Source: Octopus bimaculoides (taxonomy: Eukaryota). Taken from it: DNA of 64,000 bases. The stretch covers positions 18,983,723-19,047,722 of the forward strand of contig NC_069000.1 of the NCBI RefSeq assembly GCF_001194135.2. Direction: 5' to 3'. The notes below the pieces were generated by a model. It had not been told where the DNA came from. It did not search any database and saw nothing but the letters and a program-made list of their open reading frames with translations. The position numbers and the translations under genes are program-made. This document shows, piece after piece, positions 1 to 60,977 of this stretch. Numbering within the stretch: position 1 is the stretch's first letter; each line of letters starts with the position of its first letter.

Positions 1-252
1 GGTGGCGAACCATGCTGTACTCTTTCACCACAACTTTCTCTCACTCTTACTTCCTGTTTCTGTTGTGCCTGTAATTCAAAGAGTCAGCCTTGTCACACTG
101 TGTCACGTTGAATATCCCCGAGAACTATGTTAAGGGTACACGTATCTGTGGAGTGCTCAGCCACTTGCACATTAATTTCACGAGCAAGCTGTTCCGTTGA
201 TTGGATCAACTGGAACCCTCGTTGTCGTAAGTGACGGAGTGCCAACAACAAC
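1..252 (+). mobile_element. 3' portion of a SINE ending in a (CAA)n tail, truncated by the window edge
   Basis: Resembles an abundant octopus-type interspersed repeat (ggatcaactggaaccctcgttgtcgtaagtgacggagtgcc) followed by aacaacaac. Confidence 0.55.
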
Positions 253-284
253 AACGATATATATATATATATATATCAAAAAGC

Positions 285-511
285 CATAGGTTCATAAGGC
301 TGGTTTTCCAAATTCTGTGTATACTCTCCACCTGCCGGAGAGGATGCTGGTTGGTCTGTTGCAGGATTACGCATTTTCGCCAGCTGAGTGGACTGGAGCA
401 ATGTGAAATGAAGTACTTGTTCAAGAATATGTGTTGCCTTGTCCACAAATCAGAACAGCACAATCTTATAATCATGAGTGCAATACCCTGACCACTAAGC
501 CATACACCTGC
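285..511 (-). mobile_element. tRNA-derived CORE-type SINE
   Basis: The minus strand starts gcaggtgtatggcttagtggtcagggtattgcactc (A-box-like) and includes aagtacttcatttcacattgctccagtccactcagctgg. The same family occurs at 30885-31130 (+) and 19800-19945 (-). Confidence 0.7.
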
Positions 512-712
512 ATGCAGGCACACACACACACACACACCATCATTCTAACATACATGAATATATAATTTATCAATTGCAGGAAAGTTAAAGGATATGCAAA
601 TCATACAATATGTTGCAATATACAAAGTTTTATCACATTCTTTAAATGTTCATTATGAAATAAACAAAGTTCCAAAGAAATTTTTAAAATTGAAAGGACA
701 GTAATTCAATAC

Positions 713-876
713 CTAATTCCCAAACTAAATGGTCTATTTTTCTCACAAAACATGTGGCAATAGTTATAAAAGAAGCTATGAGAACATAGGATCAATAAAC
801 TGTAAACAGCTAAAGGCACCCAATGGTAGTCTGCTAAAGTACATGTGTGAAACCCCCTTAAGCATAGAAAACAACA
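713..876 (-). ncRNA. candidate host-transcript exon (164 nt)
   Basis: Acceptor ttttttctcctctctgatttag| and donor TAG|GTATTG around a GC-richer block in an AT-rich context. Confidence 0.35.
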
Positions 877-924
877 CTAAATCAGAGAGGAGAAAAAATA
901 TGGATATGAAGAAACTGTACTTAC

Positions 925-1052
925 TTTTAATTGAATTGCAGACACCGGCAGTACAATAAATTATATCAGTCCAGGTTAACAGCTGGTGAATAATAGTAGC
1001 ACTTGCTTCAAAAGAGGTAAAAAAAAGACAATGCTGGAAACATCCTGGTTTG
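925..1052 (-). ncRNA. candidate host-transcript exon (128 nt)
   Basis: Acceptor tagttctttccag| and donor AAA|GTAAGTA around a GC-richer block. Stop codons occur when it is joined in frame to the 3951-3888 exon. Confidence 0.35.
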
Positions 1053-2241
1053 CTGGAAAGAACTATATATATGTTTATATATATATAATCTTTTTTACCT
1101 CTGGAAAAGACTAATAGTTGCTTTGAATTGAAAATCAATGACAGACTTATGACGTAAAATGAAAAATAAACCTTTTACTCCTTAAATTCTTAACTAGACA
1201 AATTAAACAGTAATAAATAAATCAACTAAAATTAGTTTAAGTAAAACAGCTATGAAAATTAGCCAATTATTAAATAAACTAGGTATCAAATAAATAGCTT
1301 TTTTTTTTTTTTTAAATATAAATTTCACCATTTCCAAATCTATTATTTAGCAGAACTGTATAATGAAGTTGAAGATTACTTTAATAAAAGTAATTTGTTT
1401 AACATATTTTAGTATGGAATATCCAAGATCTTTGCCTTAATTTTGCAAAGGAATTATGTTCTAAAATGAAAAATTTACAATAATTTAAATTAATGCTTTT
1501 ACTATCAACAAATTTGAATAAAAATATTAATAGTACTGATAACAGAATAAAGTTTTCATTAAATTATAAAAATTTTGCAATTATTACAAACAAAAAATTT
1601 TAATTTATACAATTCTTTTCAATAAAATGGAAAAAAAAATTAGGGAGGAGAGGTTGGTAAAATTTCCATAAAAAGGGATTTTTAATTCTGTAATTAAAAA
1701 TAATTTAAATAAGATTATTGCTTAAAAATTAAAATTATAATCCAAGCACATTTATTCTTGCTAAATGAAAACTATTTTGAAGTAATAGTGAGAAATTTAA
1801 AACTTTAATGTAGCTGAATTTAATAAAATAAGAAGCCAATAAAGCAGTAACTTAGCAAACAGTGAAAAATAGTCAATGTTTCAATTATAGCTATTATAAT
1901 GTACAGAAAGATATTAAGTGTCATGATATAAATAAAAGTAATGTGAAAAAATAAATAAGCAAACATTGAAAACAATTTCATAATATTCATGATCATCTTT
2001 GCAAATATATAAAAAAAAAAATGACAAATATAAAAATAAATTTCTTTCATTAAATGCCAGCTAACAAATCTGACACAACCAAAAGCAGCCTCTACTCATT
2101 TGATTTTTATATATTTTAAGTTCAGGACAGGACTGCATGAGATTTGCCTGCAATTATTGTAACTGGTAGACGGATAAACAATGATGCATTCAGCGTTGCT
2201 GAAACGCCAGAATAGATGTGTTTAAGTGTTGCTCATTCATG

Positions 2242-2324
2242 CCCCAGGGAAAGCTAGAAGGTTGTACAGTTCTCCTTGAAATGGTGTATTTCTTAACTAT
2301 ACAACCTACTACCTCAGTCTGGGG
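2242..2324 (-). ncRNA. let-7: let-7 microRNA hairpin (mature 5p 2316-2295; 3p arm 2269-2248)
   Basis: Plus 2295-2316 aactatacaacctactacctca is the exact reverse complement of UGAGGUAGUAGGUUGUAUAGUU. The 3p arm CUGUACAACCUUCUAGCUUUCC pairs with it. The basal stem is CCCCAG/CUGGGG, the loop contains GGAG, and a CNNC motif (CAAC) lies about 17 nt downstream of the 3p end. Confidence 0.98.
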
Positions 2325-3611
2325 TCATAAACTTTTCTCCTCGTTGGCAGCTTAATATTTCACATATATGCAAGAATAGGGAAAGAGATTTTTTTTGACT
2401 TTATATAAAATTTCGGAGAGAAACGGGAGATGAAGAAAAATATGATCTATCTATTTGCACATAGACAATTAATGGTATAATCATACAATGGTGCTAATTA
2501 TAATTGACATGAACCAACACATTTTACCAAAATATATTTTTGGAAACAATTCATAAAACTTGTATGTTAACAGAATCTCTAATTTTTGCTAATTACTTAT
2601 AGGGAGATTAGAAAAATACAATAGAAATATATTTAACAAAGAAAATACAACAAATACACGATAATAATTTCACTTATAAAGTTTATTGATCAATAAATAA
2701 TGGTTATTATTTAATGTTATTTATTTAAAGCGAATTTCTTTAACATAGTGTATTCTGAGTATTGAAACTTTGAAATATTTCGATGAATTTTTTAATCCAT
2801 ATAATAATGACAAAAATCAATAGTTTTTTTTTTTTTAAATCCAAAGTTCTAAATTATTTAAAATATTACTTACACCTTATATTCCCAATATTGGTTCTTT
2901 TAATGATGATTATGATGATGATGATGATGACAGTAACAACAACAAAAACGCTTATTTGATATCTTAAATGTAATTATAAATAATATAGTTTAAAAAAATA
3001 ACTGAGAACGAATAAAATATAGCTAGAATATTGCTAGAATTAAATAATAAGGAACTAAATATCTAAAGCAATAATGTCTTGGTAAAAACTGCTATTAAAA
3101 GAAGAAAGAAAAAAACTACTAAAAGTTGTAACTGAATAAGTGGGAATTGAATAAAATAATAAGACAAACAGGCTAAAAATTTGAACAATGAACATGATTT
3201 TCAAAATACAAATGGGAAAATAAAAAAATAAAAAATTACATGAAAGAAAATAAACATCTAATTTAAATTTGTGAAAATGAATTAAGATGAAATTAAATAA
3301 CTCATATATTATTCAATCATGTTGTTTCATGTTGCACTTTAGATCCCTCCCTCAGTTTTTATCATCATTTCCAAAGAAAGTCATCCGTCTAAATGTTATG
3401 TGTATCTCAAGTCCTTAAGTATGATGTAAAGGCAATACTGTAAGTGGTTGGGGGACAGGAAATGTCTTTCTTGTTTCTTTTCCTCTATTTTTTTCTTTCT
3501 TTTCCTTCTAGTGCTCATCCAGTAGTACATTTACTGCCGATTAGACAGTAGCAGCTGTGTGGTCATTGACAGCGCATAAAATATAATACAAGACTACTAA
3601 TTTCACTTACC

Positions 3612-3687
3612 ATAGCGACACTGACCCATAAGCGTGAGCTTGTGACCCAACCTCAACACAAGTCCAGAGCTACGGGTTTGTGTAACC
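3612..3687 (-). ncRNA. mir-100: miR-100 (miR-10/99/100 family) hairpin; mature 5p AACCCGUAGCUCUGGACUUGUG at 3678-3657, 3p arm about 3642-3621
   Basis: 19/22 identity to canonical miR-100 AACCCGUAGAUCCGAACUUGUG with an intact seed. It folds with CACAAGCUCACGCUUAUGGGUC across a 12-nt loop and lies immediately upstream of let-7 on the same strand, the conserved cluster order. Confidence 0.93.
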
Positions 3688-3887
3688 AGGCCACGAACAC
3701 AAAAGGAAAAAGTAAAGGAGGTAGAGCCTTGGGAAATAGCAAACATAATGTGTTAAAACAAGAAACCAGTCTTCATTCATCTCATCTTTCTGGTGATTGT
3801 ATTTTAATTGCATACAGATTAAAAGGCTGCTTTTGAGATTTTCAAATACATAGTACAAGGTATATATTAGCAAGTAGGTATACTTAC

Positions 3888-3951
3888 CTGTAGGCTATGA
3901 ATAGTAATCATTTCATAGTAAGCCATAAACCAATAAAATGTTTTGTAGTTT
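3888..3951 (-). ncRNA. candidate exon of the miRNA host transcript (64 nt)
   Basis: Acceptor ttttctattgtttctttttctttatgtag| and a perfect donor CAG|GTAAGTA, about 210 nt upstream of mature miR-100. No recognisable protein. Confidence 0.5.
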
Positions 3952-4379
3952 CTACATAAAGAAAAAGAAACAATAGAAAATAACGTTGCGTAATATTGTT
4001 TCTATCATTTGAGAATAGTCTTAAAGCAGTAGAAAATAATTCATTTATTTATAATCAACAAATCATATTGATAATATTTTTTATTTACATAAAACAAATA
4101 AAACATGATATTAATTCAATCAGGGCACCTTTCCTTTTAAAGTATTTAAGAAAAGAAAAGAAAAAAATCTAAGGAATTTTCTTTTTGATTTATTATTAAT
4201 TTGGATATAAAAGCTAATATAAAAAAGTAATTAACAAGGTAAAGGGAAGACGGATATGATTTATTAGACAAAAAAAAAAAAATCATCATTAAATGCCTCT
4301 TCTGTCTCCAAAATATGGCAATCTGGAAATTGCTGGGATAACCATAAATGATGGTTTCTGGTTTAGGAAGAAGGTTAGC

Positions 4380-4560
4380 AATTTTGAGGAGATGGAGAAT
4401 AGTTGATACTACCAGTTCCAGTACTAGTACTTTATTTTATCAAACCCAGAGGAATAAAAAGTTAAGTTGACTTTGGCAAGATTTGAACTCTGAACATAAA
4501 AGAGCTGGAAAATAATGTCACTAAGCATTTTGTCTCAGGCTTTGACAATTCAGCCTACTC
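4380..4560 (-). mobile_element. degenerate tRNA-derived SINE of the ATT-tailed family
   Basis: Contains gatttgaactc (B-box complement) and actaagcattttgtc, shared with the arrays at 50-56 kb. Confidence 0.55.
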
Positions 4561-5119
4561 GTTACGTTATATAACCATAAATGATAACGAAGTATAAAGT
4601 TTGCTAACAACAAAAATAGATTTGCCAGCTGTCAAAACTGTCCAAATATTCACTACATTTTCAACTGTGTGTATATAGAGGTGTTTGCATGATCATTTGT
4701 GTTGAATAATTATTATATTGCAATTTATATTTGAGAAAAATTTATTAATCAGATTTAATCGTAACTTTTAAAAGAATTAAGCATTTAATTTTTCATTTAG
4801 GATCACTAATTTTGATTACTTTTTAAAGAAATATACCACTTAAGCAATGAATTATGCATAGTCTAAGTTCACTTTCCCTTTTTTTTAGATATTTAAACAG
4901 TGTGGAGATTGTGATGTCAAGTGAAAATTAAAATGGATTCTGTAAAATTGGTTGCTGAGTGAAAAGTACTATAAGCAGTCATAGTAGGTTATGGTTTGCA
5001 GTGCTGGAGTCATATAACGTGTAGGCTATTTTTTTTGTTATGTTCTTGGGCAAAGATGATGTTGAGGGAATAGCAACTAAATACAAAAAAATAAACTCCA
5101 TCACTATCAACATTATAAA

Positions 5120-6110
5120 TACACACACAAGCATGTGGTTAAAAAGTTTGCTTCCAAACCACACAAGGTTTTGGATTCAGTCTGATTGCATGCAGCCTTG
5201 GATAAGTGTCTTCTACAAAGCTCCAACCTTGTGAATGGATTTGGTAGACAGAAACTGAAAGCAGCTCAAACCGTGTGTAGTGCACACACACATGCATATA
5301 CAATGGACCCTTTGGTAATGGCTCTAATTCATTCCAGAAGCACAGAAACATATTTGTTACCATGTCAATTGAAATACGCGTATATATGAATAGCTTGTTA
5401 CAAATCTTCAGTGAATAAGTCTATATGCAATCCATTCCTGTAAGAATTCTGTCTGATTCATGAAAGCACAGAAAAGTGGACATTAAAATGAATAATAATA
5501 AAATTTGTTTAAAATCACGACAGCAACTTGGGTGGGTGGGGGTGTTAATCAATTATATAGATACCAGTACACTATTTCACTGAACCTGAAAGGATGGAAG
5601 GCAAAGATGACCTCAGTGGTAATTGAACTCAAACTGTCAAGACAAACAAAATGCTTAGTAGCATTTTGTCCAACACACTAACAGTTCTGTTTATAGCCTT
5701 TATTATTATTATTATTATTATAACAACAACCCTTTCTACTATAGGCACAAGGCCTGAGATTTTGTGGGGAGAGGTTAGTCGATTACATCAATCACATTGC
5801 TCAACTGGTATTTATTTAATGAATCCTAGAAAGATGGAAAGCAAAGTTGACCTCGGCAACACTTGAATTCAGAATGTAAAACTGGAGGAAATACCACTAA
5901 GCATTTTGTCTGGTACGCTAATGATTCAGGCATGGCTGACAGGCTGTGTGGATAAAATGTTTCTCAGCCACATGGCTCCAGATTCAGTCTTAGTGCATGG
6001 CACATTCAGCATGTTTTCTACAGGTCCAACCAAAGCCTTGTGAGGAGATTTGGTAGACAGAGACTTAAAGAAATATGTTGAATGTATGCATGTGCATGTG
6101 TCTATATGCA
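5120..6110. mobile_element. cluster of about four SINE copies (CORE-type + at 5120-5490 and 5928-6110; ATT-tailed type - at 5520-5690 and 5720-5925)
   Basis: Recurrent blocks aaagccttgtgag..gatttggtagacag and ccctttctactataggcacaaggcctgagattttg. Confidence 0.65.
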
Positions 6111-6279
6111 TACACAAACGGTGTCATTCATTTCTAGTCTTCTTTGTAAATATGTCCAGCCATGGGAAAACAAGTGAAGGTTGGTGACTGGGAAACAAAT
6201 TTATACAGACACAGTTATCCAGTAGTATTACATACAAAGGCTACGTGTAGCTGAAGATTTGACAATGCATTGTCATTAT

Positions 6280-6439
6280 CATCACCATTTTATGTCCATG
6301 TTCCATGCTGGCATGGGTTGGCTGGTTTGACAAGGAGCCAATAAATCAAGGATTGCATCATATATTTTGATTAATGTAATTTACATTATATAAATAGTTA
6401 TAATTTTTTTTTGTTAATAAAACATACATAAGAAACACA

Positions 6440-6477
<38 letters not shown>

Positions 6478-6630
6478 ACAATCTCCTTTCAGTTTCTGTC
6501 TAGCACTTCCAATTATACGGCTTTGGTTGGCCTGAGGTTATAGTAGAACATGCATGCCCAAAGTGCCACACAGTGGGGCTGAACCCAGAATCATGCAGTT
6601 GGAGAGCAAGCTTCTTTACCACACAGACAC
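6280..6630 (-). mobile_element. RTE-like tail fragment, (GT)n microsatellite (6443-6471) and CORE-type SINE
   Basis: ccatgctggcatgggttgg tail and the tagtagaacatgcatgcccaaagtgccacacagtggggctgaaccc block. Confidence 0.6.
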
Positions 6631-8119
6631 ACCTACACATTTGTAGTACATTCTCATAGATAACTATATGATAAAAATGCAATATAATAGATTGTTTTGC
6701 TAAACCAGATTATTGAAAAATAAATAGACTTATACTGAATGAAAGCTTAGGTTTCAACTGATTAATTTTCCATACAGCTCAATTTTAGTTATAGTGGAAC
6801 AGATTCAAAATAATTTGATATCAGCATATGGAAATACCATTAAAGTTTAGAAAAATGATTCATAATGTGTAAAAGACTTAACTAATCAAGGCTAAAGGTT
6901 TTGTTTTAAAACAGGAAAACTACAATTGTTTTGTGTTTTTTAAACATACAACTTCTGTAACCAAACTATCACCTGTAACATTTGATGCACCAACAAACAA
7001 TGAGAACTTTTAGATCTCAATGTATTCCATAAATTATACATATTTCAATTGTCTTTATTATTGATAAACATTTCATTTCTTGTGAAGTAGTTTCAACATT
7101 TTATTGCTTATTCTTGATATGTGTAATATTTTATAATCAAAATCTCCTCCCACACATAATTTGTATGACTTTTTGACCAGGTCATTTAAACATAATCTGG
7201 TGCGATGCTAAGATGCAGATAAGTGCTATGTGCTTTCTTATTCTAAATCAACTTAAGAGTCTAGCCTAATAAATCTGTTTAGTTTAGCTTCTCTAATCTT
7301 TTCATTTATTCACATTTATAGTTGCTCGCATCACTACCTCCACACGTACTCATGTATCTGCACAAGCACACTGAAGATATAACTGTGATTGGGTCAGTAA
7401 GTCTGGATAAACAGACTAAGTGGAAGAAAAACAGCATACCACCTAAATGTCTCTCACAAATGAAGCCCACAGATAAACTCTGAATGAAATATAATAAACA
7501 AATTTGCTTAAACTTTACTGAATGGCATATCTTAAATTATTATCAAGAATAGGCAAGATTTCATATTAAGGAAAATGCACACTATAAGTAATGTACCGAC
7601 ATGCAAGCAATAGTAAAACTGTGACTGGATTTTTGGTGTATTACTTATAGATAAAAAATATATGGTTGCAAATAAATAAAGCTTTCACAATAAATTTTCT
7701 AAATGATGATGCAAAAATTATTGGCACACATTGTTTTTAATTTTTTATTAAAAGCTAACAGAACAGACTATTAAAGTCCTGTTGCATCTGACAAAGTGAT
7801 TTTTATTTTGAGCAGGAGTCATACAAATAGGCTGTCTAGCTATACTTGCTCCTAAACCAGGTTTTTGCATAGGTCAAAACTGAATAATTTCTTGGTTCTT
7901 TACTGACTAATTTAGTTATATTTCTCTGGAACCTATTATAGTCTCCTTGTGACAATGTCAACTAGAACCACAAACACTAAGATAATCAGGAAATACCCTA
8001 TGCATGCCTAATCACTGCACCATTTGTTGATTCTATTGAATGTTATGCAGAGAGTTCTTCATCAGTTTGACATTTAGCAAGATACATTAAAATGTTGATG
8101 GTAAAGAAATTTCATATTG

Positions 8120-8650
8120 GTTTCAAATTCTGGCACAAATCCAGAAATTTCGGAGAAGTTGATTACATCAACTCCATTGCTCAACTAGTACTTATTTTAT
8201 CAACCCCAAAAGGATGGAAGTCAAAGTTGGCCGCAGCAGAATTTGAACTTAGAACATAAGGAGAGATGAAATTCCGCTAAGCATTTTGCTTTCTGACCAT
8301 GTGGTAATAGGCACTTTGGGCAAATGACTTTTGCTAATACTTCTGGCTGATCAAAGCTTTGTGAGTGGATTTGGTAAACAGAAACTGAAAAGAAGTCCAT
8401 TGTATAACTGTTTGTGTGCATATGAGCTTGTGTTTGTTTATTTCTGTGACCACTTATTTAAAAGTTATGATGGTACTTCTTATCCACTCACTTTGTGCAT
8501 TTGAAGCAATGTGGAATAAAAGATCCCTTACTTGAAAGAAAAAAGTAAAGGCTAGCGACAGGAAAGGTATCTGGCTATAAAACAATACCTCAATAACATA
8601 GTCATCTAACCCATGCTTGCATGGAAAAGTGAACATTAAAATGAATGAAT
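8120..8650. mobile_element. two adjacent SINE copies (ATT-tailed type -, CORE-type +)
   Basis: cagaatttgaacttagaacat..ccgctaagcatttt, then aaagctttgtgagtggatttggtaaacagaaactgaaaagaag. Confidence 0.6.
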
Positions 8651-8927
8651 GAAGATACTTATCCATAGGTATTGGTAGTTATCAATGTTGTAAATACAGT
8701 AAAAACAGTGGTGGGAATTTTTGTTTTTCCTTTTACGATATCACATATTTTATTTCTTTTAAAGTACATGAACTGACATTCTGTTGGTCATTTGCAACAA
8801 TTTACTATGGATGAATAGAAATAGACTCAACTGTGTCCAGAAACCCATTGGTCAGTGTTTTACATATTCTTTAAAAAAAGTTTAAAAGAAGTCCATGAAA
8901 ACAGCAGAATAAGTAAAACACAAATAA

Positions 8928-8930
<3 letters not shown>

Positions 8931-8982
<52 letters not shown>
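8931..8982. repeat. compound (GT)n(GA)n microsatellite
   Basis: Seen directly. Confidence 0.95.
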
Positions 8983-8983
<1 letters not shown>

Positions 8984-9599
8984 TTAGTATGACAGACATT
9001 AGTTAATGGATACAGTGCACTGGTATAGGCATATGATACATATAGTAATGAGTGCTGGGTGAGAAAGAGCTACATGCTAGGATTGGATGATATTCACAAA
9101 AGAGGAAGACAAAAGACAGTGACATCAAATACCAGGTTACTGGACATGACAAAACATTCTGATAAATATCAATACTGAAAATCTGTCTGGAAAAATTAAC
9201 ACAGCAATGCTAAGTACCATATGCTAATGGAGTATATCACAGAATGGGGAAAATTGACTAAAATGATCATCTTCCCATGTCTTAACAGTTAATGAGATAA
9301 AATATGCAGAGTATATATCTTAAAAGATGAAAAGAAAAAAAACTTTGCTCAACGAAATACAGTAGAAACTTTATTGTAAATAATAACTGTATATTTTGTA
9401 TCAGTGCAGAGATTTTAGGGTAATATAACAGAGTTATCACAAAGCAGCTTTCTAATACCATCTATGATAAGTTTTCTTCTTTTGATAAAAATACTTGTAC
9501 TACGTACAAATTTTCACATGAAAGGCAATAGTAACTGATTCAAAGTAATGTGAGTTATCCCAAAACCACTGAACAAAGGAATTATGTATATTAAAGCTA

Positions 9600-9930
9600 A
9601 GAAACAAATGACGGCAATGTAAAATAAAACATACAGTGTATTAGATAAGTGTTACTCATGCAAAACATTTCCCACTGGCAAGATCAAAGTACAGACGGAT
9701 CAAAATACCATCTGCACATAATGAGATAGATGGTATTCACTATGGAAGATCTGTAGAGGGTGGTGAGAAATGAGCAAGCATGATTCACTGGATGTGTAAT
9801 GTTAACTTGCATTAAAGACAAACTGCAAAGTGAAGTGTGCTTGGCATTACAAGAAATCAACCAATACGTGCAGGAAGGGCAGTATGGTTCAAGTTTCCAT
9901 TAAACCCATGTAAGCATGGAAAAGCAATGT
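9600..9930 (+). pseudogene. decayed RTE-clade LINE, reverse-transcriptase C-terminal region and 3' tail
   Basis: Broken translation resembles ..MEDL*RVVRNE..SMIHWMCNV.. and ends in the aacccatgtaagcatggaaaag tail. Confidence 0.5.
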
Positions 9931-9952
9931 ATGAAATACTACTGATAATTTG

Positions 9953-9999
9953 AAGTTGATAAAGGAGTGAATGTTGAAAATTCACTCCTTTATCAACTT
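9953..9999. repeat. perfect inverted repeat, 20-bp arms and 7-nt loop
   Basis: AAGTTGATAAAGGAGTGAAT gttgaaa ATTCACTCCTTTATCAACTT. Confidence 0.95.
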
Positions 10000-11089
10000 G
10001 AAAATTCGAGGTCAGAGATCCAACTTAGCAAGCTTTACTTTATTCTAAATGCACTATCATTGTTTTGTGTCTGTTTTTCTACATATGAATGATACTTGTA
10101 ACATGCAATTTGTTTAAACTATATATCTATGAACATGACAAAATCACTAGCTTATTAAATAATCATAAAGGAGTTCAGATATATCAATGCTAAGAAGTTA
10201 TCTTTTCAAATTATTTCTCTCAAATCTATAAAAAGCAAATTTTTCAGCAAAGTAGCAGTAATACAATTAAGAAATTAGCTATCACTAAGCCATTAAAGTA
10301 AAACAAAATTTAAAGTAGAAGATTAGCAACTCATTAGACTAATTGCACATGCATAGTTCAATAATACAAATATCAAAATGAGTATTTGATTACATACATT
10401 GGCCCTCAAAAAAAAAAAGAAAAAGAAAGAAAAACCAAATCAAGCCACTAATAATCTAATTGAATAGAAAGATTTGCTATAAATATCACTGATCTGTTAC
10501 AAACAATAATAAGAGTGTTGTCTTTAAAACAAGATGGGAAGGGGGGGAGTTATTTATGGAAACAATACTCGATTAAAATACCATCTGCTGTAAGATTATA
10601 GTAAAATTAATAAAATGCTCTGTTCTAATGCAAATTACAAAATGTTTCCTTAAATTCTATCTATTAAAACAGAAAGAAGTTTCAAATAAGATAAGTATAA
10701 ATTAAAAGGATTCTAAGATGTTATTAACAATTTAAAAATTATAAGAGTAGTATTTCATTTTCAGAGTGAATTTTTGAAGTTAACAAAAATCAATGATTGT
10801 AAAAAAAAAAAAATTAGTTTACAAATCAATTATGGAATTAGAATATTCATTCAGAAGCAAACAGTGGATGAACTAGGAGATTAGTAACAAGACAAAAAAA
10901 GAAGGAAATTAGCACTCTGAAAAATGGGACATAAAAGATATTGATAACGTATTGTTTCATCCATTTTCTTGTGGGCTGTATCTGCTTAGATCAACTTTCT
11001 AAATGAAAAGCTCAACTTATACCTACATATTTCAGAATTAAATGTAATTTCTATTATATTTGATAAACTTTATTATTTGCATAAAGCTA

Positions 11090-12601: not shown

Positions 12602-12960
12602 CTCTTTTTACTTGTTTCAGTCATTTGACTGCGGCCATGCTGGAGCACCGCCTTTAGTCGAGCAAATCGACCCCAGGACTTATTCTTTGTAAGCCTCGTA
12701 CTTATTCTATCGGTCTCTTTTGCCGATCCGCTAAGTTACGGGGGATGTAAACACACCAGCATCAGTTGTCAAGCGATGTNNNNNNNNNNTATATATACGA
12801 CAGGCTTCTTTCAGTTTCCGTCTACCAAATCCACTCACAAGGCTTTGGTTGGCCCGAGGCTATAGTAGAAGACACTTGCCCAAGGTGCCACGCAGTGGGA
12901 CTGAACCCATGACCATGTGGTTGGTAAGCAAACTACTTACCACTCAACCACTCCTGCGCC
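12602..12960 (-). mobile_element. young full-length CORE-type tRNA-derived SINE (contains a 10-N gap)
   Basis: Head ggcgcaggagtggttgagtggtaagtag, gcgtggcaccttgggcaagtgtcttctactatagcc core, tail atgactgaaacaagtaaaaagag; CpGs are retained. Confidence 0.85.
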
Positions 12961-14019
12961 TATATTTTTCTTCCTAATTTTTCTTCTTTACCTTCTTGTA
13001 ATTTTTTGTTGTTGCTGTTTTATTTTGTTCCTAAAAGCTTTTGAATATCTCTTCACTAATTGAAAGTAATAGGAATAGTTGTTTGATCAATTTATGACCA
13101 ATCCAACCCTTCTAAACATATCAGTAATTTTAAAAATAATTCTAGTTCACATGTTAGGAAAAATACTTCATTACCAGTATAGTTAAAAGTTACAAATATG
13201 ATATTTTCTAAGTATTGTCTCATTTTTCATCAGATATCATTAAGTTGTAAGAAAAATGTGAAAGAGACTGTAATGGTGATAATTAAATAAAAAGAAGTCA
13301 TGCAACTCCAAGGCACAGACTCCATCAAATATGTAGAAAAATAACCCTCCAGATACTAATTAGGTTATACACTTAATCTTTATTTAGCCTGATCCTTGTA
13401 AATATTCAAGAGAAGCCAGGCTAGCTCGTTAACATCAATAACACTCTACACTCCTTTGCTATTTTCTTTTCTCTGAAACAGACAGTCTTTACAATGACAA
13501 GGTCGTTTTTTTCCACCTAGTAGTCAGCCTTGCTTGGCTGCCTGCCTTATGTCTGATTATCATTCTGCATTAGACTGGACAGCCAGCCAGGTAGACTATT
13601 GATTTTCACCTGAAATATCACCTCTATGTGCATGACACATGGACACTGAGTACACTGACCTAGATAATGTACTCTTACCATGCTTAGCAAAACACTTATT
13701 ACCTAAACTGTAACATCAGATAAGAAAATACCTCAATTAATCAATTTATACATGTGTATGAATTTGAGTGCATGTATATGTATGCATGTGAACTCTCTCG
13801 CCTCTCACACACACACACACAATTCAAGCTATAAAGGTTTCAAATCATTTAAACAACTGAGAAGTCTTTCTTCAGAAAAAAAAACCATGTGGGNNNNNNN
13901 NNNNNNNNNNNNNNNNNNNNNNNNNNNNNNNNNNNNNNNNNNNNNNNNNNNNNNNNNNNNNNNNNNNNNNNNNNNNNNNNNNNNNNNNNGTGTGTGTGTG
14001 TGTGGGGGGGGGGTGATGA

Positions 14020-29227: not shown

Positions 29228-29860
29228 TCAATAGTTAGCCCAGAGCCTTAACGAACCTCTATTACTGGTGACATGGCCAGGTGATCTAGGTGATTGCACA
29301 GATGGTAACAACTGCTATTCAGTCCAGTTAACATCATCCCAGGAAAGAGAGAACACTTTTCTCAAAGCTGGAGAGAAGCCTGGTTTACTGAAACATCAAC
29401 AACTGTGCTTACTTTCTGCAGCCCCAGAATCGGTAGCTGAGAGGATCTGAGGGTTTCCAAGTGCACATCATACCAATGACATCTACCCAAACATAGCTAT
29501 CATCTCAAAATCCACCAAACAGGTGATCATGTAGGAATTGACAGTGCCCTAGGAAGAACTGATGAAAGAAATCTTGCCAAATACTCTGAGCTAGTAGAGC
29601 AGTACAGAAGCCAAGGGTGGTGGGCTCATTGCAAGGTAATTGAAATAGGCTGCTGGAATTTTGTGTTGCATTCACTCTGCAAAACTCAAACTTGGCTTGG
29701 AGTTACAGGTGCAGCAAAAAGGCCCATACATTCCATGATTGAAGTAGCCAAGAAAGCCATTAGATAGCATACAAGCTGGGACTTGATCAAGCCCAGTTGG
29801 AGTCTGGTGTTGAAAGACCCACAAACATCAACGATGATGCATCCAAGAGCATCTGTGAGA
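29228..29860 (+). pseudogene. decayed HERO-like RLE non-LTR retrotransposon, 3' end of ORF plus 3' UTR
   Basis: Broken translation ALTNLYYW*HGQVI..TLFSKAGEKP..IISKSTKQVIM*ELTVP*EE..LAKYSELVEQYRSQGWWAHCKVIEIGC..LGVTG.., followed by gctgggacttgatcaagccc..gttgaaagaccc..gatgatgcatccaagagcatc. Confidence 0.85.
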
Positions 29861-32073: not shown

Positions 32074-32964
32074 TACAAAGAGGTACCCAAAAGAAACCGG
32101 AATTTTGCAATATTATTTTATTCACTTAGTTTTACATGTTTACATTTTTATCACCTTCAAAGTATTCTCCATTTAAAGCAATGCATCGGTCCAGACACGT
32201 TTCCCACTATTTGGAAGCAGTGTTGGAACTCTTGCAAAGTGATGCCTTTTAATGCCTCCATTGTTTTTTTCTTCACCTCAACCACATCTGTAAATTCCGT
32301 AGCACCAGCTTTTATCACCAGTGATAACCTTAAAAAAAAAAAGGTTCGGATCAACTTTCAGATGTTCTTTCAGTTCACGACACGCATTCAGTCCTGACTG
32401 CTTTTGATCTTCCGTGAGCAAGGGAGGCACAAATTTTGCTGCAACTCTTTTCATTCGCAAATCCTTGCTCAAAATTCGTTAGCTGGAGCTCCAGGACACA
32501 CCAGTCATATCAACAAGTTCATCAGTTGTTCCATGACGGTACTTCAAGATCAGTTCATGAAATTTTGTGATGTTTTCATTTGTTCGGTTGATGGTCGTCC
32601 CGATCAAAGTTGGACTTCATGTAACAAGTGACCATTCCTAAAGCGTAGAAACCACTCATAAACTTGTGTTTTGCTCATGACAGCGCCTTTGTAAGCTGTT
32701 TGAAGCATGAGAACTGTTTCGGCTGCTGTTTCCCCCCAGCAGAAAACAGAATTTCATGGAAGCACACTGTTTCTTTGTTTCAGCCGTCGCAAAAATTGAT
32801 GAACAGGGGAGAAGTACTGCAAAACAAAGACGCACTTTGTGACAGTATGACCCAACCTGATGGCACCGGTTGGCAAACCGATGCCTGAGGGTTGCTTCTA
32901 GTAGAAAAAGCTAGAACTACAAAAGGTTTGTCCCACAGAGAATGTTTCCGGTTACTTTTAGGTA
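32074..32964 (-). mobile_element. internally deleted mariner element with both TIRs
   Basis: TIRs tacccaaaagaaaccggaa (32084-32102) and ttccggttacttttaggta (32946-32964). Transposase pieces KFCFLLG..YEWF..SGRPST..LRMKRVAAKFVPPLLTEDQK..KVITGDKSWCYG are fused almost directly to C-terminal EVKKKTMEALKGITLQEFQHCF. Confidence 0.9.
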
Positions 32965-35109: not shown

Positions 35110-35731
35110 GTTGCCAGTGTCATGTAAATGGCACCCATGCCAGTGGCACATAAGAAGCACCCATTATACTCTTGGAGTGGTTGACATTTGAAAGGGCACC
35201 CAGTTGTAGAAATCATGCCAAATCAGACTGGAGCCTGATGCAGCCCTCCGGCTTACCAGTTCCAGTCAAACCATCTAACCCATGCCAGCATGGAAAATGA
35301 ACATTAAATGATGATGTACACACACACACTGCATGTATGTGATGTATTTGGTGCAGTAATTAATGCAAAGCAACTCACCATAAGCTATTGAAAAGACTCG
35401 ACAGCAGTAATAGACAGTCAACTAAATTCATGGAAGGAATGGTTATAATAAAATACAGTATCGCCTTCCTGGCACTTGTGCCGGATGGCACGTGTAGAGA
35501 CATTCGAGCAAGATCGTTGCCAGTACCGCCTGACTGGCCTTCGTGCCGGTGACACGTAAAAGCACCCACTACACTCTCTGAGTGGTTGGCGTTAGGAAGG
35601 GCATCCAGCTGTAGAAGCTCTGCCAAATCAGATTGGAGCCTGGTGCAGCCATCTGGTTCACCAGTCCTCAGTCAAATCGTCCAACCCATGCCAGCATGGA
35701 AAGCGGACATTAAACGACGATGATGATGATG
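35110..35731 (+). mobile_element. two RTE-like 3' tail copies (older 35110-35318; young 35455-35731) ending in (GAT)n
   Basis: ggttggcgttaggaagggcatccagctgtag..aacccatgccagcatggaaagcggacattaaacgacgatgatg. Confidence 0.75.
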
Positions 35732-43841: not shown

Positions 43842-43907
43842 GTAAAAAGTATGCCATGTAGAAGGAACAAGACAAATTTCAGCTATGGCATTCTAAATAA
43901 TGTGAGT

Positions 43908-44290
43908 GTGCATATGCCTGTGTGATAAGAAGCTTGCTTTTCAACCACATGATTCTAGGTTCAGTACCACTGCATGGCACCTTGAGCAAGTGTCTTCTAC
44001 CTGAGCCTTGGGAATAGATTTGATAGAAAGAAACTGAAAGAAGCCCATCATGTGTGTTTGTGAATGTATGTATATTTGTGTCTTTGTGTTTGTCCCTTAC
44101 CACTACTTGACAACTGGTGTTGATTTGTTCACATTCCTGTAACATAATGGTTTGGTAAAAGAGACTGATAGAATAAGTAGCTAGCTTAAAAAAGATAACT
44201 ACTAGGGCTGGTTTTTTTCAACTAAAACTCTTCATGGCGATGCCCCAGAATGGCTGTAGTTTAATGACTGGAACAAGTAAAAGATAATAA
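43908..44290 (+). mobile_element. full-length CORE-type SINE
   Basis: tgtgtgataagaagcttgc head, gcatggcaccttgagcaagtgtcttctac core, gactggaacaagtaaaaga tail. Confidence 0.75.
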
Positions 44291-44789
44291 ATAAAGGATA
44301 TATGTATAAAACTCTTCATTTAACTAAAAGTGCTAAATATTCCTAAGCAGAATTTTAAAAATTCATATTTATTCTTTCCTGAATAAAACAAATGTAAGAA
44401 AGAAAATTACTCTAGACGAAAAAATATGAAGATCTTTTTACAGAAAATAATTTTCCTATTGAAAGTTGCCCAGAGAGAGAGAGAGAAAAGAAGGAAAAAC
44501 TTTTTGAGGGACTAAAAATTACAATGGGATATAAAAGAAGAGCTATAATTACCAACATAATTAAATATTTGACTTATGAGCCACTGATTTCTAATCAAAT
44601 ATTTGGGATGATGATAAATTATGTGTACACAAGGAATTTCGTCTGATAATTTCTTTGTATATGAGTAACAATTTAAAAAGTCTGAAATACAACTAAATGT
44701 AATCTCTATATAATCGTAACTGAAATAAATGTTGGTTGGTTGAATTCTCCAGTCATGCTTTACACCATATATATATATATATATATATA

Positions 44790-45412
44790 CAGGGTACAAT
44801 GGGTAAATTGTCACCATTACAAACTTTTAATTTCGCGCATGCGCATTGTTTGTTTTTCATTTTGTCAACTACACAGTATAATAGGGTCAGTTGGGAACCG
44901 TCTGTGAGAAAAACAACACCATGACGCAATTCACTCTGACAGAAATTTGGAAACGACATGCTGTACTGCTTGGCATTAGGTGTCAATCTGAGGACACGTA
45001 TCAAGGGCGATAAAAATCAAGCATCTAGTCAACATCATGGCGTTTGAGTGATAATGTCACTGATGGTGACATTATGCCTCCATTCATCTTCCCACAGTCT
45101 CAGACTCAACATGAAGGCATACATCAAGTACCTGGAGGAGGTAGTGCAGCCCTGGGTCAAGAGGGTGGCTGCTGGAAGACCCTATGTCTGGCAACAGGAC
45201 TCTGTACCATGCTACAGAAGCAAGAGAACCCAGTCATGGCTGTCAGACAATTTCTGCGTTCACATAACCCCTGACATCTGGCCACCTAACCCCTCACACT
45301 TCAACCCTTTGATTATTATGTGTGGGGCGCAGTTGAGCGACAGATCAACAAAACTCCTTGTGACACCAAAGATGTACTGAAGGCAAGGATTATGGCAGCA
45401 TTCACCAACTTA
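44790..45412 (+). mobile_element. internally deleted Tc1/mariner-superfamily element, DD37D (maT-type); right end lost in the gap
   Basis: Starts TA|CAGGGT. Transposase pieces MTQFTLTEIWKRHAVLLG and YVWQQDSVPC..DIWPPNPSHFNP(L, 1-nt frameshift)DYYVWGAVER; 37 residues lie between the second and third Asp. Confidence 0.85.
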
Positions 45413-45809
45413 NNNNNNNNNNNNNNNNNNNNNNNNNNNNNNNNNNNNNNNNNNNNNNNNNNNNNNNNNNNNNNNNNNNNNNNNNNNNNNNNNNNNNNNN
45501 NNNNNNNNNNNNGAAAGAGAATATGTGTGTGAACTTCCATAATATAAAATCAACATGAGGAGTAATTTTGATTCCCTTTTCGTTTACTTTCTAGATCTTG
45601 TATTTAATTGTATTTTAAGGTGAATATTTTTGTTTTGAAAATTAGTATTCGTTTCATCATTAAGCACTAAGAAATTTGATAAGAATTAAATTACAAATAT
45701 TGTATGCATGCTATATTTTCTGATACTACCTGAGGTGGCTATAGTACATTTCTAAAGCTGCCCATCGTCTGACGGATAAGACACTAATTATACATAATAC
45801 AGAGAAGAA

Positions 45810-50282: not shown

Positions 50283-51347
50283 CATTAAAAAGACAGCAAG
50301 CTGGCAGAATCGGTAGCACGTTGGAAAAAATGCTTAGCGGTATTTCGTCTGTCTTTATGTTCTAAGTTCAAATTCCGCTGAGGTTGACTTTGCCTTTCAT
50401 CCTTTTGGAATTGATAAAATAAATACCAATTACACACTAGGGTCAATGTAATTGACTTATCCCCTCCCTACAAATTTCAATCCTTGTGCTTTTAGTAGAA
50501 AGGATTTTTATCATTATTATTGTTAAAGCAGTGAGCTGGCAGAACCGTTAGCACGCAAGGTGAAATGCTTAGTGGTATTTCATCAGCCGCTATGTTCTGA
50601 GTTCAAATTCTGCCAAGGTCGACTTTGCCTTTCATCCTTTTGAGGTTGATGAAATAAGTATCAGTTATGCACTGGGGTTGATGCAATTGGCTTCATCCCT
50701 TCCTCCAAATTTGAGGCCTTGTGCTTCCAGGAGAATTATTATTATTATTAAGGCGGTGATCTAACAGAATCGTTAGCACACCAGGCAAAATGCTTAGTGG
50801 CATTTCATCTGTCATTATGACCTGAGTTCAAATTCCGCCAAGGTAGATTTTGCCTTTCATCTTTTTGGGGTTGATGAAATAAGTACCAGTTATGCACTGA
50901 GATTGATGTAAAATTTCATGCCCCAAAATTTTATGCCTTGTGTCTCCAGTAGAAAGGATTGTTATTGTTATTATTATTATTANNNNNNNNNNNNNNNNNN
51001 NNNNNNNNNNNNNNNNNNNNNNNNNNNNNNNNNNNNNNNNNNNNNNNNNNNNNNNNNNNNNNNNNNNNNNNNNNCCCACCAAAATTTCAGGCCTTGTGCC
51101 TAAAATAAAAAGGAGTATTATTATAATTGTTATCATTATTATTATTATTAAGGTGGTGAGCTGGCAGAATTGTTAGCAGGCCAAAATGATTGACAGTATT
51201 TTGTTTGTCTTCACATCCTCAGTTCAACTTGCCTTTCATCGTTTCAGGGTCAATAAAATAAGAACCAGTTGAGGGCTAGGGTCAATGTAATCAACTATAC
51301 CCCTCCCCAAATTTCAGGCCTTGTGCCTTTAGTAGAAAGGATTGTTA

Positions 51348-60043: not shown

Positions 60044-60977
60044 NNNNNNNNNNNNNNNNNNNNNNNNNNNNNNNNNNNNNNNNNNNNNNNNNNNNNNNNN
60101 NNNNNNNNNNNNNNNNNNNNNNNNNNNNNNNNNNNNNNNNNNNNNNNNNATGCACACACACAAACATACCCACCTACTATGATTTTTTTTTTTTATCTTG
60201 TAAAAAGAAAAATTACACGGTAGGGCTTCACATAATATAATTAGAAATAAATTACTGCAAAAAGAACCTTATTAATCTAGAATTGATAAGCGATAAATAT
60301 TACATGTAGTTAAAAAAGCAATGTGAGACAATATCAGTTAGAATTATACATCACCAATGAACAGCTTTTAAATTTCCTATTACATAGCCATCGTTGCAGA
60401 TATCTCGATTCAGTTGTTCTACAGAGGTCGTATATGCGCATGCGTTTTTGCCACACCACTCCTACCAGTTTCGAGAAGACTACATATTCTGTGTGCTGAA
60501 ATCCACATGGAAGAAATAAAGTTGAAATATAAGTACAAATTCTCATAGGAAATTTGTCATTAATAATTAAAAGTTTGCTGAATACTATAACTATCTGTCA
60601 ATTAGCACACTAACCTACTGAATCCTCTATGCAATCATTTAAAAAGTCTGCTTGCTATAAAGTACATACTTCACATTGTTTCAGCTCTACAAATATCAAT
60701 TTAATTCCCACCTCACTTCCAAAGTCTTCTGTTTTAACTTAAATTGCTTTTCATTTTGATTTTCTTTTTAAGAAAAAACTCGCTTGGATTAACATTCAAA
60801 GATAATGTAGGAAAAAAAAAACGAAACAAAAAACAGCAATCAATTCTGATTAAATATGTACAAAATCAACTTGGCTATGAAGTAATAGTTCTATTACTTA
60901 AGAGCTTTGTACTGGTTTCATAAAACCTGAAGAGAGTAAAAGCAAGTTGTTGCCCTTACCTGCCAGCAGAGCACACA

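Follow-up and report, generated by a model that had tools for sequence, protein, structure and literature searches.

A let-7-linked miR-100 of Octopus altered at three non-seed positions

The 64,000-nucleotide stretch of Octopus bimaculoides DNA analysed here (the window) very likely harbors a genuine, functional, single-locus miR-100 (Mir-10-P2) orthologue of Octopus, placed in the ancestral miR-100/let-7 cluster and changed at three bases outside the seed along the path proposed below. miR-100 is the oldest animal microRNA (miRNA), and its whole 22 nt, not the seed alone, have remained almost unchanged from sea anemones to humans. The octopus gene is a documented exception to this famous invariance and also a footnote to known data, since it appears to be already catalogued as Mir-10-P2 in published octopus microRNA sets, with its divergence apparently unremarked.

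The variant miR-100 hairpin

The minus-strand 22-mer AACCCGTAGCTCTGGACTTGTG (window 3657-3678) differs from canonical miR-100, AACCCGUAGAUCCGAACUUGUG, by A10>C, C13>U and A15>G, the two being identical at 19 of 22 positions. Positions 1-9 are those of canonical miR-100, and the seed ACCCGUA (nt 2-8 of the 5′ arm) is intact. A scan of the 64-kb window allowing up to three mismatches to the canonical sequence returned this site as its sole match, with none expected from shuffled sequences, and recovered exactly the three changes and the intact seed named by the original prediction. The interval that it had marked (3621-3678) corresponds precisely to the pre-miRNA, from the 5′ end of the 5p arm to the 3′ end of the predicted 3p arm, on the minus strand. 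Along that strand the locus reads ...UUACACA, AACCCGUAGCUCUGGACUUGUG (5p), UUGAGGUUGGGUCA, CAAGCUCACGCUUAUGGGUCAG (predicted 3p), UGUCGC... (Table 1). From the sequence and its fold we infer the ends of the arms, the dominance of the 5p arm and the presence of the three variant bases in the mature RNA.

Table 1. Positions of the miRNA cluster features and of the assembly gaps in the window
Feature	Position in window	Strand	Basis or remark
miR-100-5p (MirGeneDB Mir-10-P2) mature arm, AACCCGUAGCUCUGGACUUGUG	3657..3678	-	mismatch scan, Rfam mir-10 alignment, identical 22-mer in O. sinensis
Predicted miR-100-3p (star) arm, CAAGCUCACGCUUAUGGGUCAG	3621..3642	-	fold pairing; ends placed by the 2-nt 3′ overhang rule
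Terminal loop region between the arms	3643..3656	-	fold
Extended hairpin, basal stem of ~11 bp below the 5p start	3609..3691	-	fold; 83/83 identical in O. sinensis
Block without difference from O. sinensis (197 nt); hairpin plus 110 nt downstream	3499..3695	-	third-longest perfect run in 10.6 kb
let-7 hairpin, cluster partner, 1.29 kb downstream of miR-100	2244..2322	-	RF00027 61 bits (gathering score 53.5); 79/79 identical in O. sinensis
let-7-5p, UGAGGUAGUAGGUUGUAUAGUU	2295..2316	-	22/22 as canonical let-7
N runs of 10-106 bases (five)	12780-12789, 13894-13989, 45413-45512, 50983-51074, 60044-60149		none within 9 kb of the miRNA cluster

The 83-nt hairpin folds at -30.6 kcal/mol, a stability equalled by 7 of 500 mononucleotide shuffles, and a 101-nt version reached z = -1.6 against dinucleotide shuffles; the thermodynamic z-scores of the hairpin are therefore modest (-1.6 to -2.5). 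Regarding the structure itself, 17 of the 22 positions of the mature arm are paired in the fold, the criterion being at least 16 bp between the arms of an imperfect hairpin of ~60 nt. Full-length near-identity to AACCCGUAGAUCCGAACUUGUG, customary in the family without being formally required, is not seen (19/22).

The Rfam mir-10 model (RF00104) aligned over its full length to 3615-3685 on the minus strand with 43.7 bits (E = 2.5e-08), under its gathering score of 47.5. The canonical comparator hairpins obtained 34-74.5 bits on the same model, and 8 of 16 fell below 47.5, so this threshold is not discriminating here and the sub-threshold score was rejected as a mark of anomaly.

Linkage to let-7 and organization of the cluster

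miR-100 precedes let-7 on the minus strand of the window, and this arrangement is repeated in O. sinensis. The hairpin is therefore the miR-100 orthologue in the ancestral miR-100/let-7 cluster and not a stray member of the family. The strand opposite let-7 (2242-2325, plus) was matched by the Rfam mir-3596 model with 69.6 bits, under the gathering score of 96; six comparator loci were likewise matched by this model on the complement of let-7, and it seems to pick up let-7 antisense strands.

With regard to miR-125, no miR-125-type sequence (up to three mismatches) or TCCCTGAGA seed was found in window positions 1-2243, the 2.2 kb left beyond let-7. Similarly, none was found in the ~97 kb downstream of let-7 in the O. 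sinensis locus (L044 8802-106402). The third member of the classical cluster thus seems, as far as these sequences indicate, to be unlinked or very distant in Octopus, and an Ovu-Mir-10-P3 is present in the published O. vulgaris set (PMC9699675).

Additional signals were observed around the two hairpins. The minus strand carries at 3606-3612, identically in O. sinensis, the consensus 5′ splice-donor sequence UAUG/GUAAGU, which starts nine bases past the predicted 3p end and overlaps the basal stem of the miR-100 hairpin, inside the 197-nt identical block. A pyrimidine tract followed by AG is found ~40 nt upstream of let-7 (about 2345-2385). The putative donor and the tract with its AG would fit the predicted introns reported inside LET-7/MIR-100/MIR-125 clusters (bioRxiv 10.1101/2024.12.01.626237). 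Moreover, in O. sinensis a gene model (LOC115221517; 'uncharacterized protein', 99 aa, devoid of Pfam domains) begins on the let-7 strand, 1.2 kb downstream of that hairpin, and comprises three coding pieces over 86 kb (L044 10001-96402, plus), the first of which corresponds to the window ORF at 779-1174 (minus). This model may be a spliced tail of the miR-100/let-7 primary transcript that was annotated as protein-coding.

The remainder of the window is AT-rich (~32% G+C), and a six-frame ORF survey of it revealed no convincing protein-coding exon, only transposon fragments. Exact look-ups of five ORFs overlapping or near the hairpin gave no record, and a homology search with the 88-aa pseudo-ORF spanning it returned no candidate. 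Inspection of the translations by eye placed transposon-derived ORF fragments at 45048-45380 (plus), 32281-32478 (minus) and 29480-29764 (plus); the first looks mariner/Tc1-like and shares 66% protein and 84% DNA identity with an O. bimaculoides copy. The O. bimaculoides locus reached through this mariner-like ORF (L043) was rejected as an orthologous region, being a paralogous repeat copy. Repeats of the window match other O. bimaculoides DNA at 79-93%. Short SINE-like repeats are dispersed at 12606-12965, 5142-5420, 8224-8457, 35129-35731, 43882-44305 and other positions, in numerous copies with 70-88% identity within the window, and are found at up to 93% in loci of O. bimaculoides and O. 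sinensis as well. Weak Rfam SCARNA7 matches at 451-641 (minus) and 6333-6488 (plus) look like low-complexity artefacts: the alignment of the latter crosses a (TG)n microsatellite, and 451-641 contains a (TG)n run too.

Conservation between two Octopus species

The comparator from O. sinensis was a locus (L044) on chromosome CM016876.1 of the independent assembly GCA_006345805.1, which was reached through the longest ORF near the cluster (779-1174, minus), matching an O. sinensis 'uncharacterized protein'. Positions 1-10828 of this locus are collinear with window positions 10989-267, and in the 10.6-kb alignment 499 positions are mismatched and 814 columns contain gaps; identity at aligned positions is 95.1%. 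An identity of 95.1% over 10.6 kb indicates that the window and O. sinensis represent different Octopus species.

The same variant 22-mer is present in O. sinensis (L044 7359-7380), as is the same let-7. The 83-nt miR-100 hairpin shows neither mismatches nor gaps between the two species, and the let-7 hairpin, equally unchanged, lies within a 226-nt perfect run; among the three longest stretches aligned without a difference, one (197 nt) thus holds miR-100 and another (226 nt) let-7. From the alignment counts, at 4.9% substitutions, ~4 mismatches would be expected in 83 nt, and the probability of observing none is ~0.016; for the 197-nt block it is ~5e-5. The absence of any difference across the variant hairpin amid ~5% substitution shows, at the level of these two genomes, that it is held by purifying selection. 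A second hairpin in the conserved 110 nt downstream of miR-100 was considered and rejected, no significant fold being found there (z = -0.03).

It had been proposed from the window alone that the change was real rather than an assembly error and that it was lineage-specific. The former was confirmed by the 83/83 identity within flanks that are 95% identical. As for the latter, the variant is present in two Octopus species and absent in the non-cephalopod comparators, and its specificity is established to that extent.

Rarity of the three substitutions

Public metagenome contigs were scanned with AACCCGTAGNTCNGNACTTGTG, a pattern in which positions 10, 13 and 15 were free and the other 19 were required to be canonical. 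This degenerate scan yielded 41 loci, 39 of which carry A/C/A at the three positions. The remaining two (L017 1210-1231 and L029 939-960) share AACCCGTAGCTCCGCACTTGTG and identical flanks, are G+C-rich and form no hairpin, and were discarded as chance matches. The 39 A/C/A loci correspond to 24 distinct miR-100 hairpins with differing loops and star arms, all with A10, C13 and A15, and at least 10 of these 24 have let-7 on the same strand 100-1100 nt downstream. By sequence, some of them are human- or vertebrate-like; the contig sets hint that others come from cnidarians, namely a recurring type without let-7 in its vicinity, or from insects. The scan shows that no otherwise-canonical miR-100 in the metagenome collection varies at positions 10, 13 or 15, which does not mean that miR-100 never varies.

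Among the canonical hairpins, four metagenome loci (L010, L012, L016 and L024) present an unusually long span of 95-97 nt from the 5p start to the last pairing partner, and L010, L012 and L024 have let-7 nearby.

The exact variant 22-mer had no match in metagenome, prokaryotic-genome or viral contigs. The degenerate pattern had none in prokaryotic genomes, and its match in one viral contig (L001) was rejected, as no mir-10-family match accompanied it. The accession series of scaffold KB200869.1 is, we take it, that of the limpet Lottia gigantea. On this scaffold the canonical 22-mer was mapped with 16,465 small-RNA reads from the bivalve Tegillarca (PMC3972184). In open papers, neither the triple variant nor any of its six single and double intermediates was found in print, and no remark on the divergence of octopus miR-100 was found in the literature. 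A sub-string of the variant does occur in a lumpfish immune-transcriptome paper and looks unrelated, judging from the subject of that paper.

The divergence, which had been called unusual at the outset, is so indeed: all 24 comparators are A/C/A, the Tegillarca read is canonical and no published variant was found. Because the canonical form is shared by the Tegillarca 22-mer and by 24 hairpins, of which at least 10 are followed by let-7 and several, of cnidarian type, are not, A10/C13/A15 was probably the ancestral state.

Pairing and compensation within the hairpin

Eighteen hairpins were aligned without gaps in either arm, and pairs were counted in the common register of the family. Position 13 is a C-G pair in 13 of these hairpins and is unpaired in four; the U-A pair of the window occurs only there. 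At position 15, where 16 comparators have A-U, the window alone has G-U, and at position 14 it has G-C, the comparators having G-C or G-U. Position 10 is A-U in 14 comparators, and in the window C faces C in the common register.

In the star arm, U13 faces A, G14 faces C and G15 faces U, and a G is available for C10. The minimum-energy fold contains U13-A, G14-C and G15-U, leaves A16 unpaired facing C, as in other miR-100 hairpins, and pairs C10 with the neighbouring star G by bulging one U, for which a one-base register shift is needed. The central block of the star arm differs from the closest comparator (L002) at five consecutive bases, GAUUC to ACGCU. The predicted facing of U13 with A and of G15 with U, with pairing preserved, was thus reproduced by the fold and by the 18-hairpin alignment; at position 13 it is the usual C-G that U-A replaces.

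When the 5p bases were reverted on the native structure, position 10 cost 2.6 kcal/mol and position 13 cost 0.7 kcal/mol, and position 15 gained 0.9 kcal/mol; in most of the reverted sequences another structure than the miRNA-type fold has the lowest energy. The hairpin therefore presents one clean two-sided compensation (13), one wobble-preserving change (15) and one register-dependent accommodation (10). The compensation is real as a description and statistically thin, because a single two-sided compensatory pair was matched by 115 of 500 column shuffles and because position 13 is unpaired in 4 of the 18 hairpins. The argument for the structural selection that had been invoked hangs on the U13-A compensation, a single two-sided pair. 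The energy effects are small, and the firmer evidence for constraint is the perfect conservation between two species, not the compensation.

Probable correspondence with the published octopus microRNA

In the published O. vulgaris set, Ovu-Mir-10-P2 is listed once and no a/b paralogue accompanies it (Zolotarov et al. 2022, Sci Adv, PMC9699675). One vertical-lobe library of that study yielded 2,544 reads of Ovu-Mir-10-P2_5p, and the k-mers TACGGGT(A) were reported as seed sites of Ovu-Mir-10-P2, one example being in the 3′UTR of the TRIP12 orthologue. The study relied on the same O. sinensis assembly to map and annotate transcripts and deposited its miRNA sets in MirGeneDB. Considering the seed, the name and the assembly, the window locus is very probably the same gene as Ovu/Obi-Mir-10-P2 (PMC9699675).

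Proposed mechanism, path to fixation and alternatives

According to established miRNA biology, the miR-100 and let-7 hairpins would be transcribed together in one primary transcript, from which Drosha and Dicer would release a duplex of the 5p AACCCGUAGCUCUGGACUUGUG and the 3p CAAGCUCACGCUUAUGGGUCAG. The 5p arm would then enter Argonaute and repress mRNAs through its unchanged seed, at UACGGGU sites. The published O. vulgaris 5p reads and seed-site k-mers fit such processing and targeting (PMC9699675).

The three changes would have been fixed somewhere on the lineage to Octopus by the path that least disturbs existing pairings. C13>U and A15>G, both transitions, would still have permitted wobble with the old complement, whether in the star arm or in a target, and a later G>A in the star arm opposite position 13 would have produced the full U-A pair. 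A10>C falls in the central region, which is normally left unpaired in animal miRNA-target duplexes, and the hairpin would accommodate it through the remodelled star block (GAUUC-like to ACGCU). Nucleotides 13-16 constitute the region that gives 3′-supplementary pairing. As a net outcome, processing and seed targeting would have been kept and this region would have gone from CGAA to UGGA, with the whole hairpin coming under purifying selection after fixation. This drift along a wobble path is a reconstruction made without intermediate species. We favour a near-neutral fixation that left the hairpin intact and was followed by a return of purifying selection, because all three changes are of the kinds least harmful to existing pairings; nothing requires adaptive retargeting.

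Adaptive retargeting, in which the changes at nt 13 and 15 (and 10) would have been positively selected and the hairpin compensation would be a by-product, is the most serious alternative and nonetheless a rather unlikely one. It could have operated by altering the 3′-supplementary pairing of seed-matched sites, or by tracking a co-evolving, extensively complementary RNA such as a key target or a decay trigger. The location of two of the three changes within nt 13-16, the perfect conservation of the variant between two Octopus species and the invariance of these positions in every comparator would all agree with it; however, both changes in the supplementary region are wobble-keeping transitions, as near-neutral drift predicts, and the conservation of two close species speaks of present constraint, not of past positive selection.

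It is very improbable that the locus is a diverged paralogue or a surplus copy in decay and that a canonical miR-100 is expressed from another place in the genome. The search for a second copy covered 64 kb of the window genome and 106 kb of O. sinensis, which leaves room for such a copy, but the locus occupies the let-7-linked ancestral position, its hairpin is identical over 83/83 nt amid 5% substitution, which is not decay, and only one Mir-10-P2 is named for O. vulgaris in the published complement. Finally, an assembly or sequencing artefact in the source genome can practically be dismissed, even on a scaffold gapped by five N runs of 10-106 bases, since an independent assembly, made from a different species, reads the same here, the closest gap lies at a distance of 9 kb from a cluster whose let-7 is canonical at 22/22, and the star arm bears matching changes.

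Significance

The locus amounts to a natural experiment, in which the apparently sole, let-7-linked miR-100 changed at three non-seed bases, had its hairpin adjusted and then remained fixed, indicating that the non-seed bases of miR-100 can change without loss of the gene. The contrast of CGAA and UGGA at nt 13-16 offers a concrete means of weighing 3′-supplementary pairing at miR-100 targets. Moreover, an annotation based on miRBase identity at up to two mismatches would miss or mislabel the octopus miR-100.

A long shot is that Octopus, or a wider cephalopod clade, belongs to the rare lineages whose sole let-7-linked miR-100 escaped its full-length freeze and was later frozen again in another form. 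Should the pan-eumetazoan invariance of nt 9-22 stem from an ancient partner with which miR-100 pairs extensively, either a target or a regulator of stability or processing, this partner would have been lost or would have co-evolved here, and the comparison of octopus with molluscs of canonical sequence could identify the ancient miR-100 partner.

Comparison with known systems

One of the closest known counterparts is Ovu-Mir-10-P2, with which the window gene shares the family name, the seed-site k-mers TACGGGT(A) and a 5p arm that begins with A and is, in the window by prediction, dominant, and whose study used the O. sinensis assembly that carries the exact hairpin of the window. In the context of the let-7 complex of bilaterians (miR-100/let-7/miR-125), Octopus likewise has miR-100 upstream of let-7 on one strand; unlike that complex, its locus has no miR-125 in the stretches searched (2.2 kb of the window and ~97 kb of O. 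sinensis).

In relation to canonical miR-100 (Mir-10-P2), represented by the human-type L005, the bivalve/limpet form (PMC3972184) and cnidarian forms, the octopus form shares the seed ACCCGUA and a mature RNA in the 5′ arm. The octopus hairpin also shares the A16-C mismatch and the loose nt 11-12 of the canonical hairpins, and its let-7 linkage is as in bilaterians. In contrast, C10, U13 and G15 are found in 0 of the 24 comparator hairpins.

A tolerance of non-seed change is shown by other members of the ACCCGUA-seed group, namely vertebrate miR-99a and miR-99b, Drosophila miR-100 and the nematode miR-51 family, in which the seed was kept and the non-seed half differs. The vertebrate miR-99a and miR-99b are extra paralogues beside a retained canonical copy. 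In contrast to these, the copy that changed in octopus is linked to let-7 and apparently the only one, and the particular substitutions are other ones than in the group.
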